A stretch of 64,000 nucleotides of DNA from the NCBI GenBank assembly GCA_009103225.1, contig RHPI01002955.1, forward strand, positions 154,486 to 218,485. Direction: 5' to 3'. Below the pieces are notes generated by a model. The model had not been told where the DNA came from, did no database searches, and worked only from the letters and a program-made list of their open reading frames with translations. The DNA is from Chlorokybus atmophyticus. Lineage: Eukaryota; Plantae; Mesostigma and Chlorokybus algae. Below, piece after piece: positions 1,342-39,547 of the stretch (the first letter of the stretch is position 1; each line of letters begins with the position of its first letter). The translations under genes were made by a program, and so were the position numbers.

Positions 1342-3543
<2,202 letters not shown>

Positions 3544-7625: not shown

Positions 7626-10415
7626 TTACAGAATGTCTGATACAATGGTCCAAACCCCATTCTCCTCTGCCTTGCCATTGATAAGTCCAACAATATTGTT
7701 ATTATTGCTCCTCTTGCCACTCTCCTCACCAACGTGACCAACCATGTCACCATCATCATCATCATCGTGATTGTCGTGTGCATGCATCCCCACATTCATG
7801 TTGTTGGCTCGCTCCCGCCGAAGGCGATAAGCTTCTGTGAGTTGCCATTGACGGGAGCGCACGGCATCATCCACGTCATCTAACGAACCGTATGGAATGT
7901 TGGGCAGCTGCACTTTACCCGCTGTTGATGGGGATGTTGGGGTGGACGTTGGGTTGGGTGTTGGGTTGGATGTAGGGTGGGATGTTGGGTGGGGTGAAGT
8001 GGGTGAGGACGGTTTGGGAGTGGCGGTAGAGACGCGTGGCGGTGACTTGGCTTCACGCCTATGTGTGTATGCGCTGGTGAGCGCACGCACGCGGTCCTCG
8101 CGGTCTTCTTCTGGAAACAACTCACCCACAACACTTGCACTGCAACCGAAAGCAATGTGTCACAGATCTAAACCAAATACACCCAACATGTGGTGCACGC
8201 GTGTGTCCCTCACCTTGTGGTTGGTGATGTGTATGTTGGTGGTGTGAACGACGAAGCCATCTGCACAGTGGCAGCATTGCTGTTTTCGCCCTCCACGCGC
8301 TTGTTGTTGGGTTTCTTCCCCTTCTTTGCATGCGGCAAAGACGGCAGCCTCGCGCTGGCAGATAAGGGCTGCTGAACTGCCTGCTGCTGATACGGCTGTT
8401 GAACTGGCTGCTGATACGGCTGCACATAGGCCTGCGGATACGGCCCCTGAACTGGCTGCTGATATGCCTGATACGGCTGCTGCATCGCCTGCGGGTGATA
8501 CGACTGCATCGGCTGTCTCGATACCGACTGCGGCATCTGCCAGGAGCGCATTGGCTGTGGGGAATATGTCAATGGAGGGGGCTGATACCGAAGAGGAGGA
8601 GGTTGGGGATAGTAATCACGCTCGTACTCTTCACCGTCGTTGTCGTCGTCCTCGTCGGGGAACACGGAGAACTTCAATGAATCCCACCATCTTGTCACCA
8701 CACCTGAGAGTGTAATAATCAGTCAGGTATTATACGTGCGCGCGTGCGCATGTGCACATGCATGCGCATGCATGTGTAGATGTGCGCATGGGCGTGGGCG
8801 GGTGCATGTGGGTGCGCACATGCGCATACGTGTGCGTGTGCGTGCTTGTGTGTTGTTCAATGGCATAATGGTTGTATCACCTTCGCGGACAAGGGCCGTG
8901 GCCATAACGAGCACGAGGCCGAGCAGCACAGGGCAGCCGGACGCCATGCTGGAGGCCCAACCGCCCGTTGCCGCTGGCGGCGGGGGCGCCACAACTGGGT
9001 GACACAACAACAGTCTGTCAACAACCATGTAACAGCAGCGGAGTGACAAGTTCATTGCCACCGCACACTCAAACACGCATGTAGGCGCACGTACATGCGC
9101 AAGCGCATACATGTGCAGAAACTTGAATACACATGCACGCGCATGCATGTGTATACATGCGTGCTCGTGTGGGCTTCTGCATGTGCAGGCACATGTTTGT
9201 TCAGAAAGATGCCTGACTGCACGCGCACATAGGCACACGCATGTGCGCATGTGTATGCGTGCTTGTGCGCATGTATGCGTGCTTGTTACGGCGCGCGCGT
9301 GGGTGTCCTCAAGTGTGCGTGCGTGCGTGCTTGCGCCAATGTATATGAGCACATCTCTTACTTGGCGCAGCTACAGCAGTCACGAGTGGCGCCGGCCCCC
9401 CGCTCATCATCCCCGTCGTCACCCCCTTCGTCATCTCTCCAACAGTCGTCTCATGCACGGAACTCAACGCATCGTTGTCCACGTTAGCCGCACTGGTGGT
9501 CACAGCGGCCTCCTGGATGTCGGACAGACGCGATCGCGACATGCGACCGAAGTAACCCGTCGAGGGGAGACCGTGCTCACGCTGCCAGGAGGCGACCGCA
9601 GCACGCGTGGACTCGCCGAATTCACTGTGGTGCACATGCGTGCGTGAGTTGGAAATGTGGTCTTGCATGTGTGCTCACGCGCGCGTGCGCGTATAGACCA
9701 AAACTGTACTTGTGCATACTTGACTATGAGAGAGATAGAGATACAAGAGTACAGGTAAATGCGTCTGTCTGCCAGCAAACAACACTCCCGAGAAGGTAGA
9801 CATCACTCCTGTTAAGAACTACATGCAAAAGGATCTATGATTCAGTCATTCGCTCTGACTTGAGCTTGCGAAATGCACGCATTGCTCCCGTGTTATTACT
9901 CTTATTGCTGTCATCATCATCATCATCATCGACATGATCATTACACTAATTGTTGTTGACTCACCCGTCAATCTGGTTGGCACTGAGGTAGCTTCCTCTT
10001 GCGAGCCACCTCTGTAGCTTGCCTACCTCCGCTCCGCTGTCCCCCAGTCCAAGATCCCTATCAAACTCCACTACCGCCGCCGCCACCGCCGCCTTGTACT
10101 TCACCGCCGCCACGCCAGCCCTGCCAGGAACACGGACAGACACGCCGTCAGCGACATCCCTCACATGCTTGCTGAGGAGGGAGGTGATATGGCCATCCTG
10201 GCACATATGCAGTGCACAAATGCTCGCCTGCGGCGGCGGCGACGGCGCAAGCTGGGGGAGAAGGCCAGGCCCGTCCTTGTTGATGGTAATGTTGTGGTCG
10301 CTGACGACGTTGCCCTTGGCGGCATCCTGGACGTCATCGCCGCCGCCGTTGTCGTCAAGGGCGGCGGCGGTGTCTTCGTCGGCGACGACGCATAGCTCAT
10401 CCCCGCCACCTGCAT
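7626..10415 (-). CDS. Peptidoglycan-binding domain (PG_binding_1) protein with single TM helix and Q/P-rich tail; putative plastid transit peptide
   Basis: Splicing across 9965/9624 gives DLGLGDSGAEVGKLQRWLARGSYLSANQIDGEFGESTRAAVASWQREHGLPSTGYFGRMSR, the PGBD three-helix pattern. Further exons 8994-8881 (TM: VLLGLVLVMATALV), 8703-8214 and 8139-7626 join in phase. The N-terminus is S/T/A/R-rich; the first intron and start codon are uncertain. Confidence 0.75.
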
Positions 10416-10852
10416 GGCAGTATACAATAGTAGAGACCTTTTAACACCAATTCCGCCCCGTCCTTGTCCTCCTCCTCCTCCTCCTCCTCCGCCGCCGCAA
10501 CGGCCTCAGCCAGCAGCGCAGAAAAGCGCGCCATTTTTCGCCTGTTGCATGGTTAGATTACACCACAGGCTACGGCCCCAGATGACGATTGGTATCACGT
10601 CTCTCTCAGATACGCAACGGGTACATCAGAGCGTATCTATGAATATCGCAGCTGCGTTACGTCACCAAGGCGTAACCAGCATAGTCACGTGACCACGGTA
10701 ACCTGCATTACGTCACTCAACTATACTGTTACCCCAGTCGTTTCTTTGGCCTGATCAGGCCGATCAGGCCGAGCAATAGCAAAAGCCTGGTGCCTCCCGA
10801 TGTCCGTCTTCCTCTGCTCTCTCTGTCCATGAGACTTTCATCTTCTCAGCCT

Positions 10853-11066
10853 ATGGCCTCCGCTCGTGTGGTGGGTGCGGCGGCGGCGTTGTCCTCCTCC
10901 CCCCGGTTCGGCTCGGCCTCCAACTCCCCGCTCATGCCGTCGACGCCCAGGAAGAAGCGACGCAACAGCCCTGCGGGAGTGATACTGGCGGGGGGGACGA
11001 GCAGGCTGGGGCAGTATTTGGAGAGTATGGATAAGGGGAAAGCGGCACGGAGATTACTTGCGCTGG
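10853..11066 (+). CDS. Probable first exon of a gene truncated by the CT run/gap; [13 protein letters not shown] resembles a nucleotidyltransferase (MobA/NTP-transferase) N-terminal motif
   Basis: GC-rich ORF head-to-head with the PGBD gene, ending at donor CTG|GTGAGG just before the (CT)n run. The family call rests on one short motif. Confidence 0.35.
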
Positions 11067-11079
11067 TGAGGGATTGTTG

Positions 11080-15205
<4,126 letters not shown>

Positions 15206-15599
15206 GCGGGGGGGGGAGTGTGTGAGAGATTGTGCATGCGCACAAATGCAGGGTGATGCACGCGTGCGTTGGCATGCACAAAGGTTTGAGCGGGCACGCA
15301 CACACACGTGCATACGCACACGCGCAAGCACAAGCACACGCAAGCATGCTCGCACACACGCACACACTACGACGATACGCACACACGTGCGTGCGTGCGT
15401 GTGATTGGTGCGCACACATATTCTCACGCACGCATGTGTGTGCGTATGTGCTAGTCATCTCACGCACGGACACGCACGCACGTGCGTGTGCACCTACACC
15501 CTTACACACACACACAAACACCACACACTGTTTCTCGTGTGCACACGCACATGTGCAAGCACATGCGTGTGCACACACACGTACAACACTCTCTCTCAC

Positions 15600-18500
15600 C
15601 TTGTACACCTTATGCTTATCGCACAGGTTATCGAAATCCGTGAACAGTCTATTCAGAAACACGACGAGTTTCAGCGCGCCGAGCTGCGCCGATAGAGGCG
15701 TGAACCCCACGATGTCGGAGAAGAGGCAGGTGGACTCGCCGTAGTAGTCGACGATGTTGCGGCTGCCGCGGCGGAGGAGGCGACCGATCTGGGGGGGGGG
15801 ANGTGGGTTGGGTGGGGGTGGGGGAGGGGGAGGGGAGCGTGTGCGTGTGCGCGTGCGTGTGTGTGTGTGCACACATGTTTCACACGTACGCGCACGCACT
15901 TGCACGCGTGCGCGTGCATGCGCGTGCGTGTATGCGTGTGCTTGCACACACGCACATGCACACTTGCGTGCATCTGCGCTTGCATGCGTGCGCGTGTGTT
16001 TGTACGTTTGGTTTGATCTGCGCTCACCTTTGGTGGCACCAGATCGTACAGCAATCGATCCGATATCTTGTTCTGTCTCTTGAGCTCTTCTTGCAACAGA
16101 AACCAGCTCCTACTCTTCAATTCCGTCTCCCTCACCGCTAGCACTAACAACAGCAACTCCACCACTATGAGCGCCAGGTCCACATACGGGTACTCTTCGT
16201 GTTGCCCGTTGTTGTGTCGCGGCAGCGTAACCACCACAGCGACGTAAAACAGTATGGCGCAGGACGAGACAAAGGTCGCGTATATGAACCGTAAAGCACA
16301 AGCCAACATGAGCACTTGGAGTGCTATCACCGTGGTCATGACGACACACTCCCCCAGCCTCATATTCAACCGCATCACCGCGAGGAGTGTCGACACGCCC
16401 ACGCCACACACACTCAGCGCAGACATCACCTCTTGGCTCCATCTTCGCTTTAACGTCAGCAGCAAAACGCCAGCGCAAGCGATGAGAGTGTAGTTCAAGC
16501 GAACGAGGAAAGCGATGAGCAACCAGGAGTAACTGCGGCGCTGGAGGATGTCGACGGCAGTGGTGGGGAGTAAGGTGGCGCAGAAAACAGCGAGGACGAC
16601 CTGTGTGGGTGGGTGGGCGTGTGTGTCTGAGTGTGTGTATGTGGGTGTGCGGGCGCGCGTGCATGCGTTCACGTGCGTGTGTGTATGCGTACACGCGCAT
16701 GTGCGTGTGCATCGGTGTGTCTGTGTGTGCGCGTACACACATGCGCGCACACACATACAAGAACACATGAGCGCATGTTTGCGCGCACACCCGCATGCTC
16801 ACACATGCGTGTAAGGTAGTGAGACAGACAGTTGTCAACCAGTTGTATACCACCTCCCCCAACCTACCTGCATTTGTCGCAAGCTCGCTCGATTCCACCT
16901 ATTGCAATAGCTGTTCTCAAGCTCTTTCTCTCTGAAGTTGAGCGTGATCGGGTGGAGCGGCGGCGTGTGGTTGTGGACGTGGTGATGGTTACTGTGGCGG
17001 TGGTGTTGGTGGCGAGCGCTGCTGCTGCGACGCATGCTGGAAGTGCCGCCACCCTTGGGGGGTTTGCGTGTGATGGAGGCGTGGAAGTGGTGGACGCTTG
17101 AAGGCATACATGTCCACCACCACTGTGACCAAAACCAATTGAGACATGTGAAGACAAACACACACGCGCACGGACACGCGCGCGCACACGCACACACAGG
17201 CATGCAACTATGCACACGCGTGCACGCACCCACTCGCACACCCACACACGCACGCACACATATGCACCCACACTTACATGCACACGTTCATATGTGCATG
17301 CGCACGCGCACGCACATGCACGCATGCACGCGCGCACATGTCATGGCGATATAGTTGTTAACAACAAACAAGCCCTTCTCACCAAATTCCATCTGTTCCA
17401 CCCCACAAGCTGCATCTTATCTCCCGTGTTCGATCCCGTCGGTGAGCTCGACGTCGAGAGCGGTTGCGGCAAGTTCAGCTGTATCGTCGTGGCCAAGTTC
17501 GATGGTACCGGGGACGCGGGCGACATCGCCAAGGTCGCCGAAGGAGATATGGACTTTGGAATATCAGTATCAGAGTTGATATCCGCGGCGATATCGGCGG
17601 GATCCCAGTGAGGCTGAGGGAGACTCATAGTGAGTCTGTGAAGAAATTCTTGTTGTCTGTCTTCGGCTGCATCCTCCTCCTCATTGTCATTGTTGTCATT
17701 GTCATTGCTGTTGTTCTTGTTGCTGCCAGTGTTGCTCATCGTATTGTTGTTGTTGTTGTTGTTGTCCGTCTTGGTGTCTACTGTTGGGTTGTCATCGAGC
17801 GTGCTCTGGTTGTGTGTGATGCTATTGTTGCTGTTGTTGCCCTTGGGTGACAAGTCAGCCATGATGTTGTCGGCAAGTAACCGCTCTTCAGCGTATTTGT
17901 CGCTCAGTAAGAAGAAGGTCTCCATGGCACCCTTGCCCTTGACCTCGATGACGCCACGGCTCTCAATCTCAAAGCCACCGGCTGCCTGATGAAGTGTGCG
18001 TGTTAGCGAAGTGCACTATGCGTATGTTTGTGTGGTCGCGCACGTGGCACGATGAGCACACGCAGACACACGTGCAGGTACATGCGTATGCGTGAGCATG
18101 CGTATGCGCACGTGTATGTGTGGGCCCGTGCATGTGAAGCTATAAAGCAGTTGCAACCCAGCACGCACCTCCAACAGTTGTTGCGTCGCTTTGGTCATGT
18201 GCGCCTTTCCAGGTGCCCCGTGACTGCACAAACCAAACATGATTCAACTCTCAGCACCATTGCTACCAACACACGCACCCACCCACCCACCCACCCACCC
18301 CACCCATACACACCTTGCCATGCGCGACGCCGTGTTGACCGTGTCCCCGAACACCCTGTAGTTGAGCTTCTTGAGCCCGATGACCCCCGCCACCACGCTG
18401 CCGGAATGCATGCCGATCTTCACCTCAAGCGGGATCATCGCCTTCTTTGCAGTCTAGTGGGACAACATTGCGTGCTTGATAGATGCAGTTGTACTCAGCG

Positions 18501-21500
18501 AGAATAAAGTGTACACAACATACTTTGTCGTACACTGCATGTGCGCGTGCGCGCATGCGTGTGCACACGTACATGCAGCTGTAACACACACACACACGCT
18601 CACACCTGTTTTCTTTTCAGCACTGCTTGCAGCTGCGTCTTCACCTCCAATATATCCAGCGCCAGCGCCGCGACCCTCACCGCATGATCTTCTTGTTTAT
18701 CCGGTATCCCCGCTCCACACATATACACTTCCCCAACAGTTTCAATCTTGTACACGCCGTGCGCATCACATAAAGCATCAAACTCCGAGTACACGCCGTT
18801 GAGGAATGTGATCAATCTCTTTGCGGGAGTCGAAGCGACGATCTGAGCGAAGCCTTCTAATGCGACGAACATGATGGTGGAGTCGACGTACGTGTCGGCG
18901 ATTAAGGTGCGACCGCTTTGGAGAGCGCGGAGGGTCTTGCGGGGCAACATGGTCTCCAACAACACCTGGGAGGGGCNNNNNNNNNNNNNNNNNNNNNNNN
19001 NNNNNNNNNNNNNNNNNNNNNNNNNNNNNNNNNNNNNNNNNNNNNNNNNNNNNNNNNNNNNNNNNNNNNNNNNNNNNNNNNNNNNNNNNNNNNNNNNNNN
19101 NNNNNNNNNNNNNNNNNNNNNNNNNNNNNNNNNNNNNNNNNNNNNNNNNNNNNNNNNNNNNNNNNNNNNNNNNNNNNNNNNNNNNNNNNNNNNNNNNNNN
19201 NNNNNNNNNNNNNNNNNNNNNNNNNNNNNNNNNNNNNNNNNNNNNNNNNNNNNNNNNNNNNNNNNNNNNNNNNNNNNNNNNNNNNNNNNNNNNNNNNNNN
19301 NNNNNNNNNNNNNNNNNNNNNNNNNNNNNNNNNNNNNNNNNNNNNNNNNNNNNNNNNNNNNNNNNNNNNNNNNNNNNNNNNNNNNNNNNNNNNNNNNNNN
19401 NNNNNNNNNNNNNNNNNNNNNNNNNNNNNNNNNNNNNNNNNNNNNNNNNNNNNNNNNNNNNNNNNCCCCCCTCATACCTGCGCTCTATGCCTTTCCACCT
19501 TCACATCCTTCCCCAGCAGGTACCCCATCCTGTCCGCCCTCTCCCTCTTCCACGCCGCGAACAGATGCAACCCCAACGACGCGCTCATATACGCTAACGT
19601 TCTCGCTAGTCCCGTGCCGTCCGCGTGGGTGTGCGGTCTCGACGCACACGCCACGTACATGAGAAAAGTCATGAGACCGGCGACGGAGACAACGTAACGG
19701 GTCCAACTCAGACCCGTGAGGTGGTAAACGAAGTTGAGCACGATGATGAGAGTGATCTTCTGGTATTGGGTCGACCAGACGGGGCCGCCGACGGTCACGG
19801 TCCAACTGCGAGAACCGCATGTGTGTGTTGGAGGTGATGTCACTCGTGTACGGGTATGTGCGTGTGCGTGTGCGTGTGCGCGTGCGCGTGCGCGTGCGTG
19901 CATGCGTGCGTGGGTGTGTGACACACGCACACGCATATGCAAGCACACGCACATGCACACATACACACCCTTGCCCACGTGCGCACGCACCCACGCACAC
20001 ATACACCAAGTGTGTGCACATTCCGACACTCACCCGCTCATATACGTGACTCCGAGCAGTATCGTCAAGAACGGCGGCAGCCAGCTCCCATGCGTGGTGA
20101 GTACAAACGACCCCCTCACATGTCTACTCGCGCTCGCTCCCCAAACCATCACTACCAACAAAGCCGCCCCGACGTTGATCCCCCACCACGCCGCGGAGTG
20201 AGTTATGAGAGAGGAGTGGGAGGCGCCGTGGCAGAGGACGTTGAGGAGGAGGAGGACGAGGGTGGCGGGGAAGGTGCGGTGGACTCCCTGGGGGAAGAGG
20301 GTAGGAGGGTGGGTGCGTGTGTGCGCGCGTGCGCGCATGCGTGCAAACACATGCACGCACGCACAGATGCGAGTGGGCGCACGTGCATGTGCGCATACAT
20401 GCAAACCCATGCGCACACGCACACGCAGAATACGTGTCAATTGGCGCGCACTCGCGCACGCGCACGCGCACACACACACACACAACTCACCCTCAGCATC
20501 GACGGCCCCACCGTATGCCTATAATCCTTCTCCAGTTCCGGCGACACGAACGCCAGCGTCGCCCAATGCATCGTGGCGTTCCTCCTGCTCCTTATCGCTA
20601 ATATAAACACGTTCGCCAACACGATCATCGACACGCTCTTGTGCCACCTCTGTCTCACGCTGTTGCGTTCCCCGCCACCCGTGTGGTTGTGGTTGCTGTC
20701 CTTTGTCGTGCCGTCGTTGCCAGTGTACTTGCGAGCGAGCTTCTCGACGGAGGTGGACACGCGAGCCTGCTTGTGGGACGAACTGCTCGCACGGGAAGTG
20801 CGCTTGGTTTGCATGTGGGTGTGTGTCAACGTGTGTGCGGCGTGTGAGGGGGAGGTGGTATTGTTGTCGTGGGTGCGGTTGTGGGGTGTGTGGGTGGTGT
20901 TGTTGCCCGGGACGGTGTTGTTGAGTGTGTTTGGGTTTGTGGTGTGCGCGCTGTTATTGTTGTTAACGTTGTTGTTGGGGTGGGTGGTGGTGGTGTCGAT
21001 GTTGGTGGTGGTCATGTTGTTGCGGGTTGTTGCGTGGCTTCGGGTGCTCATAGCCGTAGCCATCATCCCGGACGACGTCATCGTCATATCAAGCATCATC
21101 TCAGGACTCGACAGCGGCGACTTCACCTACACAAGTGGATGTTAGGTCCCACCCTCCACCCCACCCCACCCACCCCACACTCACCGCCTGTCCCCACTCT
21201 TCCTTTGCCGCCATCTGCCACTCCCTCGCTACTCTCAGCCACCTCTCGTTGCCATTCACTTCCCCCTCTCTCTGCAGCTCAGCTATCACGCTCGCGTCCC
21301 CTCCGCCCAGAGAGAAGATGTCACCATGAATCAAAGACAGAGGCTTGATCATCAAGGGCTCGGATTGGCGACGGGAGGCGCGGGGATTGGTGGTGGAGGT
21401 GGAGGGGGGAGGGAGGATGGAGTGGCCACTTGAGAAAGACTGAGAGAGGGGTAAGTGAGTGACCTGCGTGTGCGTGTGCGTGTGCGTGTGCGTGTGCGTG

Positions 21501-22719
21501 TGCGTGTCTGTGTTCTTACTGGAGTGGCACGGCGGAGACCGAGTTGGCTGGCTCGTATACTTAGAAGGGCATTCCTGCGCAATGACAAGCGCATCTAGCA
21601 CTCTCTCTCTAACTGTCTCTAGACTCAATACACATAGCGGAACACGTGTGTCTTACGTTGGTGTGGAGGGGAAGCTGCAGCCTTCCAGAAGCCATTCCTC
21701 ATGAGGCTGATGCAAGCACACGACACTCATGAGTATTTGCACACGCACACGCTCATACAAGCACGCAGAAAGTGTGACAGAGTTACTCACGTGTAGGCCA
21801 CGCATGCGGGAGCTGTCCCGACGCCACTTTGAGGGGGACCCGCTCTCGTCCCCACCCTCGTGGTCTCCCACTCGACTACGCGCACGACTTGGCATCAGCG
21901 CGCGCACGCACGTGTCATTACACCCACACCCACACCCACCCACCCACCCACAACTCACTTTGGCACAGACTCAGAACTACTCCTTCCCCGTCGCAGCCTC
22001 GCCTGCTCCTTCACCTCACTGCTCTGCTGTTTCTGTACCAACGCTTGTTGCTGCAGTTGCGGCGTGTCGACGCCGAGCATCACCGAACCCGACGACGCCG
22101 TACGGGCAGGGATCGTCACGTGGATGGAGCCGTTGTCGGACTCGGAACTGTTGTCGCGTGGAACCTGGGGTGAGAAGTGTGTGTGTGTGTGTGCACGCGT
22201 GTGTGTGTACGCAATTACGCATGTGAGTGTGTCTGTGTGCGTGCGTGCTTGCGTGTGTGTACACAAATACGCTGCACGACCACATGCGCTCGTACACTCG
22301 TCGTGCATGCGCATGTGCGCGTGTGCGTGTGTGCGTGTGTATGATAAATCCCTGGCTAACCTAGGCAAGAAATGGGAAACAAGGCGCTTACCACTATGCG
22401 CAGTTGTGGTGAGGGCGGCGTTGTTGTCGTTGTTGTCATCGTTGTCGGGTCGGGATGCACAGCATTGGGTCGCCAGCGGCGTTTGGTCGTGAGCGACGAA
22501 GACGGCGATGGTGTTGTTGTTGTTGTTGTTGTTGTTGCCGGCATCGTTGGTGATGATGTGCTCGGGTTGCCGCTGTCGTTCTGCCTCGCGGGCCGCAGCA
22601 AGCCCTGGTGTTGCGGGAAGGATGTTCTGTTGGTATGTTGTTTTAACGCACATGTTGGTAGGGCAAGTGCGAACGAGTTTGAAGGTACCTCGTCTTGGTC
22701 GGATGGCATTGCGGCACAT
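15600..22719 (-). CDS. 12-TM class III nucleotide cyclase with two catalytic domains (TM6-C1-TM6-C2), predicted guanylyl cyclase; 3'-partial
   Basis: Exons include 21126-20491, 20287-20034, 19805-19478, 18965-18645, 18453-18314, 18223-18169, 17985-17383, 17122-16868, 16600-16028 and 15788-15600. C1: [10 protein letters not shown]...[12 protein letters not shown]...[16 protein letters not shown]...[14 protein letters not shown]...[13 protein letters not shown]2 start: [10 protein letters not shown]...LNRLFTDFD...VYK. Each TM cassette is preceded by a L-x-F-x3-ELE-x2-Y motif. The start codon is uncertain. Confidence 0.88.
18977..19465. other. Assembly gap (489 N) inside a cyclase intron
   Basis: N run; the flanking exons (…RAQ | VLLETMLP) join in phase 0. 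Confidence 0.95.

Positions 22720-39203: not shown

Positions 39204-39547
<344 letters not shown>

Follow-up and report, generated by a model that had tools for sequence, protein, structure and literature searches.

A transcribed gene with two cyclase domains

The window analysed here, a 64,000-nucleotide stretch of contig RHPI01002955.1 from the alga Chlorokybus atmophyticus, carries a single spliced and expressed gene on the minus strand between positions 22439 and 15600, as established from the open reading frame (ORF) listing, a three-frame translation and RNA contigs. The gene encodes a class III nucleotide cyclase whose full-length product we put at about 1500 residues. A low-complexity N-terminal region is followed by six transmembrane (TM) helices, a first cyclase domain (C1), an Asn-rich linker, six more TM helices and a second cyclase domain (C2). 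This TM6-C1-TM6-C2 layout had been proposed in an earlier reading made from the DNA letters alone (the sequence-only reading), and it is what we see on the minus strand, the six helices of the first membrane block having been assigned partly by eye and partly with the help of a paralogue model. We consider it likely that the protein is a pseudo-heterodimeric cyclase in which the two catalytic halves are swapped, most probably converting GTP to cyclic GMP (cGMP).

Public sequencing runs were placed on positions 15210-21200 of the window. One RNA contig of 4927 nt (run X1) covers all ten exons from 21126 to 15600, that is, from the first membrane block to C2, with no mismatch. Four shorter RNA contigs from an older run (X2) give the same structure, and a second RNA contig, of 1640 nt, connects the second membrane block with C2 and beyond; in total, three runs yielded RNA contigs of the cyclase gene. 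After small shifts at ambiguous junctions, each of the ten exons is bordered by AG/GT, and the spliced ten-exon sequence reads through 1131 codons with no in-frame stop, the other two frames containing 58 and 33 stops. Both cyclase halves are encoded by one mRNA and one ORF. The possibility that they belong to separate transcripts, which the sequence-only reading had kept in mind, is at odds with the single 4927-nt contig.

Could the genome or RNA assembler have joined two adjacent genes, a repeat-truncated pseudogene or a contaminant gene? A gap of Ns and two single Ns do interrupt the locus, which also includes a dinucleotide run of 4.1 kb; the public model of the gene is truncated, and Logan contigs can in principle span neighbouring genes. 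However, the ORF stays open across ten canonical splice junctions, independent RNA runs of two different years concur, and the 1640-nt contig ties membrane block 2 to C2. In addition, the full architecture recurs in two Chlorokybus paralogues and in Mesostigma orthologues, which group with the target in one clade. On the strength of the one-contig ORF, the splice junctions, the concordant runs and the paralogues, we rejected two transcripts, a pseudogene and a contaminant, and we regard an artefact as largely refuted and extremely improbable.

The low-complexity N-terminus (about 232 residues) is encoded by 5' exons at 22439-22383, 22149-21961, ~21877-21791, 21706-21656, 21573-21520 and 21439-21185, placed from the JGI model and by exact peptide mapping of its protein, P0001; a Pfam search found no domain in it. 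The X1 RNA contig reaches 796 nt upstream of 21127, where its loose end reads as a 10-residue peptide. The next exon (20491-21126; X1 contig, AG/GT borders) contains the end of the low-complexity region and helix 1 of membrane block 1. Helices 2-4 are encoded at 20034-20287, an exon present in the RNA contig and absent from the JGI model, and helices 5-6 at 19478-19805 (X1 and X2 contigs, splice sites), together with the start of a helical linker ending in ...ERHRAQ. The following intron (18966-19477, GT..AG) encloses the assembly gap, a run of Ns at 18977-19465; its joint falls at 18963/19476 (cut +2) in two RNA runs. Since RNA contigs of both runs splice 19478 to 18965, with the frame continuing from ERHRAQ into VLLETMLP, the gap is entirely intronic and the frame is kept. 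A single N at 15802 is likewise intronic.

The first half of C1, with the motifs FVALEGF and KIETVGE, lies at 18606-18965 (PF00211 match and alignment to Rv1625c/Cya). Its second part, at 18314-18453, holds a 15-residue motif with the purine-site-2 Arg and the transition-state Asn and Arg (PF00211 match and alignment to AC8/AC5/AC9). A 55-nt exon at 18169-18223, with AG/GT borders and encoding a 19-residue peptide of C1, explains the 196 RNA letters found between 17984 and 18606. The exon at 17383-17985 (RNA contigs, weak PF00211 match) encodes the end of C1, with VKGKG, the gamma-phosphate Lys motif, and then the Asn-rich low-complexity linker. A His/Ser-rich linker and the segment preceding helix 7 come from 16868-17122 (X1 and X2 contigs; not in the JGI model), and membrane block 2, with six hydrophobic helices, and the helical linker to C2 from 16028-16600 (RNA contigs, hydropathy). 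The last exon in the window, 15600-15788 (PF00211 match, X1 and X2 contigs), encodes the first third of C2 with FSDIVGF and ends in ...DKHKVYK at a GTGAGA donor. The long Asn-, Thr- and His-rich low-complexity coding stretches at 17383-17985 and 20491-21126 are transcribed and in frame, and the introns of the gene are rich in CA/TG repeats.

Catalytic residues and membrane topology

The cyclase family PF00211 (curated cut-off 21.9 bits) matches C1 at 18974-18603 (profile positions 5-93, E 9e-22, 78 bits), at 18453-18247 (98-137, E 6.6e-14, 52.4 bits) and, weakly, at its end (18015-17344, 156-182, E 0.017), as well as the C2 exon at 15788-15597 (6-54, E 7.2e-12, 45.7 bits). The whole C1 of P0001 scores 179 bits against the same profile. 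Catalytic positions were set by alignment to Rv1625c/Cya and to mammalian AC8, AC5 and AC9. C1 has Ala at metal site 1 (FVALEGF), where Rv1625c has Asp. Its KIETVGE motif presents Glu at purine site 1, which is Lys in adenylyl cyclases, and Glu at metal site 2, where these have Asp. In the 15-residue motif, the residue aligned with the Asp of AC8/AC5/AC9 C2 (purine site 2) is Arg, and the transition-state Asn and Arg are retained; C1 also holds VKGKG. C2 supplies the metal site 1 Asp in FSDIVGF, which is in the window, and the metal site 2 Asp in IGDAY, which is read from RNA. Taken across the dimer, the catalytic set is thus complete, with two Asp from C2 and Glu, Arg, Asn and Arg from C1. 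The sequence-only reading had described C1 as lacking both metal-binding Asp and retaining the Glu, Asn and Arg, which the alignments bear out, and the first metal Asp that it noted in C2 is present; its concern that C2 might lack the second Asp is answered by the RNA, which reads NTIGDAY.

For all retrieved proteins, an HMM-guided alignment (HMM, hidden Markov model) was reduced to a six-letter pattern giving metal site 1, purine site 1, metal site 2, purine site 2, Asn and Arg. The target reads AEERNR in C1 and DND… in C2. The Chlorokybus paralogues Chrsp203S03283 (P0155) and Chrsp38S05578 (P0003) read AEDRNR/DNDERK and SEDRNR/DNDEQK, respectively, and two Mesostigma models read YEDRNR/DNDDTK. 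Judged by these residues, C1 and C2 are complementary, with their roles in the reverse order to animal enzymes, as the sequence-only reading had supposed. Similarity scores for part of the protein concur: the second C1 exon scores 30.9 bits against mammalian C2 and 20.0 against mammalian C1 in AC8, and 29.3 and 16.9 bits in AC5. The C2 domains of the paralogues score 116-119 bits against animal C1 and 64-67 against animal C2, and the target C2 fragment 54.7 and 31.6 bits.

Six hydropathy segments exceed the threshold in membrane block 2, all within residues 878-1033 of the spliced product. The paralogue P0003 was modelled with AlphaFold from a 36-sequence alignment (pTM 0.67; pLDDT about 90 in the catalytic domains and 60-80 in the membrane parts), and the model has six long helices ahead of each catalytic domain (6+6). 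Its best whole-chain matches by Foldseek are 8sl4, 8buz, 9u3r, 7pde and 6r3q (E 1.7e-29 to 2.1e-26), which are human and bovine AC5, AC8 and AC9, with Rv1625c next. The paralogue model also suggests the dimer geometry. With swapped halves that complement each other, the protein is expected to have one pseudo-heterodimeric active site: C1 and C2 would fold head-to-tail, leaving one working and one degenerate site. C2 would give both metal-binding Asp and, in the paralogues, also the triphosphate Arg. C1 would contribute the purine-reading Glu and Arg, the transition-state Asn and Arg, and the gamma-phosphate Lys of KGKG.

Mammalian AC5, AC8 and AC9 resemble the paralogue model in whole-chain fold over ~1150-1240 columns, and they too are pseudo-heterodimers with one active and one degenerate site. 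They differ in that the order of roles is reversed, in the presence of Lys/Asp where the target has Glu/Arg, and in overall sequence (~15% identity); moreover, we found no evidence in the target for the G-protein or forskolin regulation of mammalian adenylyl cyclases. For both first exons, the solved structure that matches best in sequence is Rv1625c/Cya (E 1.8e-19 and 1.3e-9), which shares the six-helix anchor followed by a class IIIa domain. Unlike the target, however, it is a homodimer of one 6TM-cyclase unit, each domain having the full set (Asp, Lys, Asp, Asp, Asn, Arg).

Two other kinds of cyclase were considered and ruled out. Consistent with the sequence-only reading, which saw no P4-ATPase upstream, tblastn gave no match in the window to the N-terminal portions of five ATPase-cyclase fusions, and Pfam detected no ATPase domain in the N-terminus of the target. 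Only ~800 nt of transcript lie upstream of 21127, and a P4-ATPase fusion was excluded on these three grounds. CAPE (combined adenylyl cyclase with phosphodiesterase, PDE) is also a class III cyclase of streptophytes, considered in the literature in relation to motile cells. It differs in that an N-terminal class I PDE domain is combined with a few helices and only one adenylyl cyclase domain. No PDE domain was found by Pfam in the target, where PF00211 is the sole family matched, by two cyclase domains, and a relative of CAPE was excluded on this basis. In the papers on CAPE, the 'algal AC-like' sequences that are mentioned are all single-domain, and CAPE is reported to be absent from Mesostigma (PMC5159850, PMC8115329).

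Swapped-halves relatives and the predicted substrate

The two-domain proteins that we retrieved comprise 122 with the swapped pattern, 5 with the mammalian order and 7 with neither. Swapped members include the dictyostelids Polysphondylium and Synstelium (EENHNR/DADQQQ), a Symbiodinium protein annotated 'gca', Prorocentrum, the oomycete Achlya and the stramenopile Platysulcus; long P-type-ATPase fusions with the ciliate-type pattern DEKSNR/DQDDLE are likewise swapped. The target belongs to this widespread protist group, typified by Dictyostelium GCA. Glu occupies purine site 1 in 111 of the 122 swapped relatives and, in those 111, purine site 2 is most often Arg (41), followed by Lys (37), Ser (16), His (12) and Cys (3). 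The sequence-only reading had singled out the Arg of the target as unusual; it is odd by animal standards only, being the commonest residue at that position. Seven swapped relatives have the purine pair Lys/Asp.

A tree of concatenated C1 and C2 (115 rows, 387 columns, IQ-TREE quick search, with weak deeper nodes) groups the three Chlorokybus genes with two from Mesostigma and one environmental protein with 100% SH-aLRT support. Asn at the purine-1 position of C2 is found in this clade alone. An Atlas result hints at similar proteins of about 1100 residues in Chlorophyta. The environmental member, the nearest relative outside the streptophytes, is an intronless 1313-residue protein (KEERNR/DNDEDK) from marine metagenome contigs of a picoeukaryote (loci L001-L003, gene 10001-13942) that are gene-dense and intron-poor, with a GC content of 63-65%. 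It carries an added cyclic-nucleotide (cNMP)-binding domain preceding TM6-C1-TM6-C2. Three more marine relatives (P0272-P0274) have the same pair of cNMP-binding and cyclase domains. A cyclic-nucleotide sensor within the cyclase itself points to possible feedback control. The Chlorokybus paralogues P0003 and P0155 are full-length, have the same architecture and show ~77-82% mutual identity; either a recent duplication or haplotigs placed on separate scaffolds could explain the pair. In X4 and X5, two runs whose labels name other organisms, 10-15% of the gene's sampled words are present, mostly exonic, which is compatible with sister species of Chlorokybus having the gene.

Dictyostelium GCA is a 12-TM guanylyl cyclase (PMC8684759). 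Like the target, this type is a single 6TM-C1-6TM-C2 chain without a P4-ATPase. From its taxon, length and pattern, we infer that P0008 is the GCA orthologue. The dictyostelid relatives also have a C1 devoid of metal Asp and equipped with Glu, a basic residue (His), Asn and Arg, and a C2 with both Asp and without Asn/Arg (EENHNR/DADQQQ). However, identity in C1 is ~39%, the target falls in a separate clade, and where the dictyostelids have His at purine site 2 and Ala at the purine-1 position of C2, the target has Arg and Asn, respectively. The long Asn/His-rich inserts are particular to the alga.

Alveolate guanylyl cyclases have swapped motifs as well (PMC5746546). The alveolate P4-ATPase guanylyl cyclases (Paramecium/Tetrahymena GC, Plasmodium GC-alpha/beta, Toxoplasma GC) share with the target these motifs, the Glu at purine site 1 and the two-block topology of the cyclase half, and ciliate-type fusions appear within the top 150 matches of the C1 search. 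They differ by their P4-ATPase half, of which the target has none. The ciliate-type proteins also keep the metal site 1 Asp in C1, have Ser at purine site 2 and belong to a different clade.

Which nucleotide would such an enzyme use? Glu at purine site 1 is a hallmark of guanylyl cyclases. The pair that reads adenine is Lys/Asp, and Glu/Arg is its exact charge inverse. In the proposed site, the Glu would accept hydrogen bonds from guanine N1-H and N2-H and the Arg would donate one to O6; a donor at site 2 (Arg, Lys or His) would suit the guanine O6 and clash with the N6 amino group of adenine. Because of the Glu hallmark, the donor at site 2 and the production of cGMP by characterised swapped relatives, GTP is the probable substrate, a prediction drawn from the residues of the target and from the biochemistry of its relatives.

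Several points weigh against the reading of this gene as a swapped-halves guanylyl cyclase. Compared over its whole length with animal C1 and C2, the C1 domain gives mixed scores (100 and 87 bits, respectively, for the target; 89 and 105 for the paralogue). We therefore dropped whole-domain similarity of C1 as proof of the swap, which rests on the functional residues instead. In membrane block 1 of the target, only three hydropathy segments exceed the threshold, the three weaker ones having been counted by eye. About two thirds of the target's own C2, at its C-terminal end, are unseen, 10 residues past the last exon having been recovered, and the loss of Asn/Arg from C2 and its triphosphate Arg are read from the paralogues only, which are 54-67% identical. 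Finally, the literature yielded no enzyme assay of any Glu/Arg member, so that the case for a GTP preference is built on hydrogen-bonding arguments and on relatives with Glu/Ser (ciliate-type) or Glu/His (dictyostelid-type).

The last point bears on the main rival to GTP, an adenylyl or dual-specificity enzyme: the same pseudo-heterodimer would make cyclic AMP (cAMP), or accept both nucleotides, if Glu and Arg formed a salt bridge that left the base unread and the specificity loose. Glu/Arg mirrors the charges of Lys/Asp and the two residues would be near enough to pair with each other, while the Lys/Asp pair in seven swapped relatives argues that the scaffold is compatible with adenylyl cyclase activity. 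However, the predominance of Glu at purine site 1 among the swapped relatives extends to the ciliate and dictyostelid types, whose characterised members make cGMP (PMC5746546, PMC8684759), and we regard this alternative as unlikely.

A catalytically silent or regulatory protein, such as a pseudoenzyme or a receptor scaffold, would account for the loss of both metal ligands from C1, and the unseen part of C2 and the unusually long low-complexity inserts leave it some room. Yet C1 has lost precisely what the half that does not bind metal would be expected to lose, C2 retains both Asp, and the Asn, Arg and KGKG of C1 are intact. The paralogues have a complete complementary set, and the gene is transcribed and correctly spliced. 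This makes a silent protein very improbable, and an active guanylyl cyclase with swapped halves remains our preferred reading.

Class III cyclases are abundant in green algae, and the presence of a cyclase is unsurprising in itself. Full-text searches of the literature found no 12-helix, two-domain cyclase described in Chlorokybus, Mesostigma or other green algae, in keeping with the sequence-only view that the architecture had not been described in the green lineage. What is new is the lineage in which this architecture occurs, a corrected gene model and a distinct streptophyte subclade; the kind of enzyme was already known. We know of no recognisable class III guanylyl cyclases in land plants, and it has long been asked whether the plant lineage ever possessed canonical enzymes that form cGMP. 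The deepest streptophyte branch (Chlorokybus, and also Mesostigma) carries the protist 12-helix, swapped-halves type in several copies, and the Chlorokybus gene is transcribed. Since the protist-type cyclase is present in this branch, a loss on the way to land plants would have to be placed later. It is possible, though doubtful, that the Chlorokybus/Mesostigma clade represents an ancestral green-lineage membrane guanylyl cyclase from protist stock, kept only in the earliest-branching streptophyte algae, and perhaps in a marine picoalga, and lost before land plants. If so, the clade would provide the first canonical, assayable source of cGMP on the plant stem, and the six-helix blocks of its cyclases could serve as ligand receptors. 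A role in a flagellated stage, which the sequence-only reading had suggested, gained no support, as we found nothing linking the gene to such a stage. The target is a clean candidate for asking whether Glu/Arg specifies GTP, since this pair is the commonest in a largely uncharacterised protist family.

Public gene model and assembly repeats

The top match of an exhaustive phmmer search with the first C1 exon is the 1084-residue JGI Chlat1 model Chrsp111S00060 (P0001) of Chlorokybus atmophyticus, whose exons are 100% identical to the window, in agreement with the assignment of the DNA to a streptophyte alga in the sequence-only reading. The model lacks exon 20287-20034 and part of 21126-20491, which together encode four of the six first helices, as well as exon 17122-16868 and the entire C2. 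It ends before C2 by intron read-through (…LVPPKTVHGFR) and thereby presents one cyclase domain and about eight helices. From the protein collections, this truncated model and the paralogues were retrieved, but no full-length protein derived from a transcript of the gene. Because of the missing helices, linker exon and C2, the swapped 12-helix layout is hidden in the public annotation. Surveys based on annotation would overlook this architecture, and in the reference assembly the 3' exons of the gene are missing as well.

RNA contigs of X1 and X2 extend 735 nt beyond 15600 into sequence that is absent from the window. The first 30 nt of this extension read (V)NTIGDAYVC, which includes the second metal-binding Asp of C2. 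A search for these 30 nt across the 64-kb window with up to 3 mismatches gave no match, tblastn with five full-length relatives revealed no further cyclase-like exon anywhere in the 64 kb, and no RNA of X1 or X2 was placed on 15210-15597. The sequence-only reading had called for recovery of the missing C2 exons: the second Asp could be retrieved from RNA, whereas the remaining exons are not in the window. The assembly loses them at a perfect (TC)n run of 4122 nt (11082-15203) followed by a single N (to 15205), past which the frames hold unrelated ORFs. The likeliest explanation for the dinucleotide run and its N is an unresolved microsatellite or an assembly join that engulfed the last C2 exons. 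Comparable perfect (CT)n runs with a single N occur at 3222-3406 (184 nt) and 39214-39544 (290+40 nt) and probably have the same kind of origin, and other Ns adjoin poly-G/poly-C tracts (15791-15802, 19466-19471).

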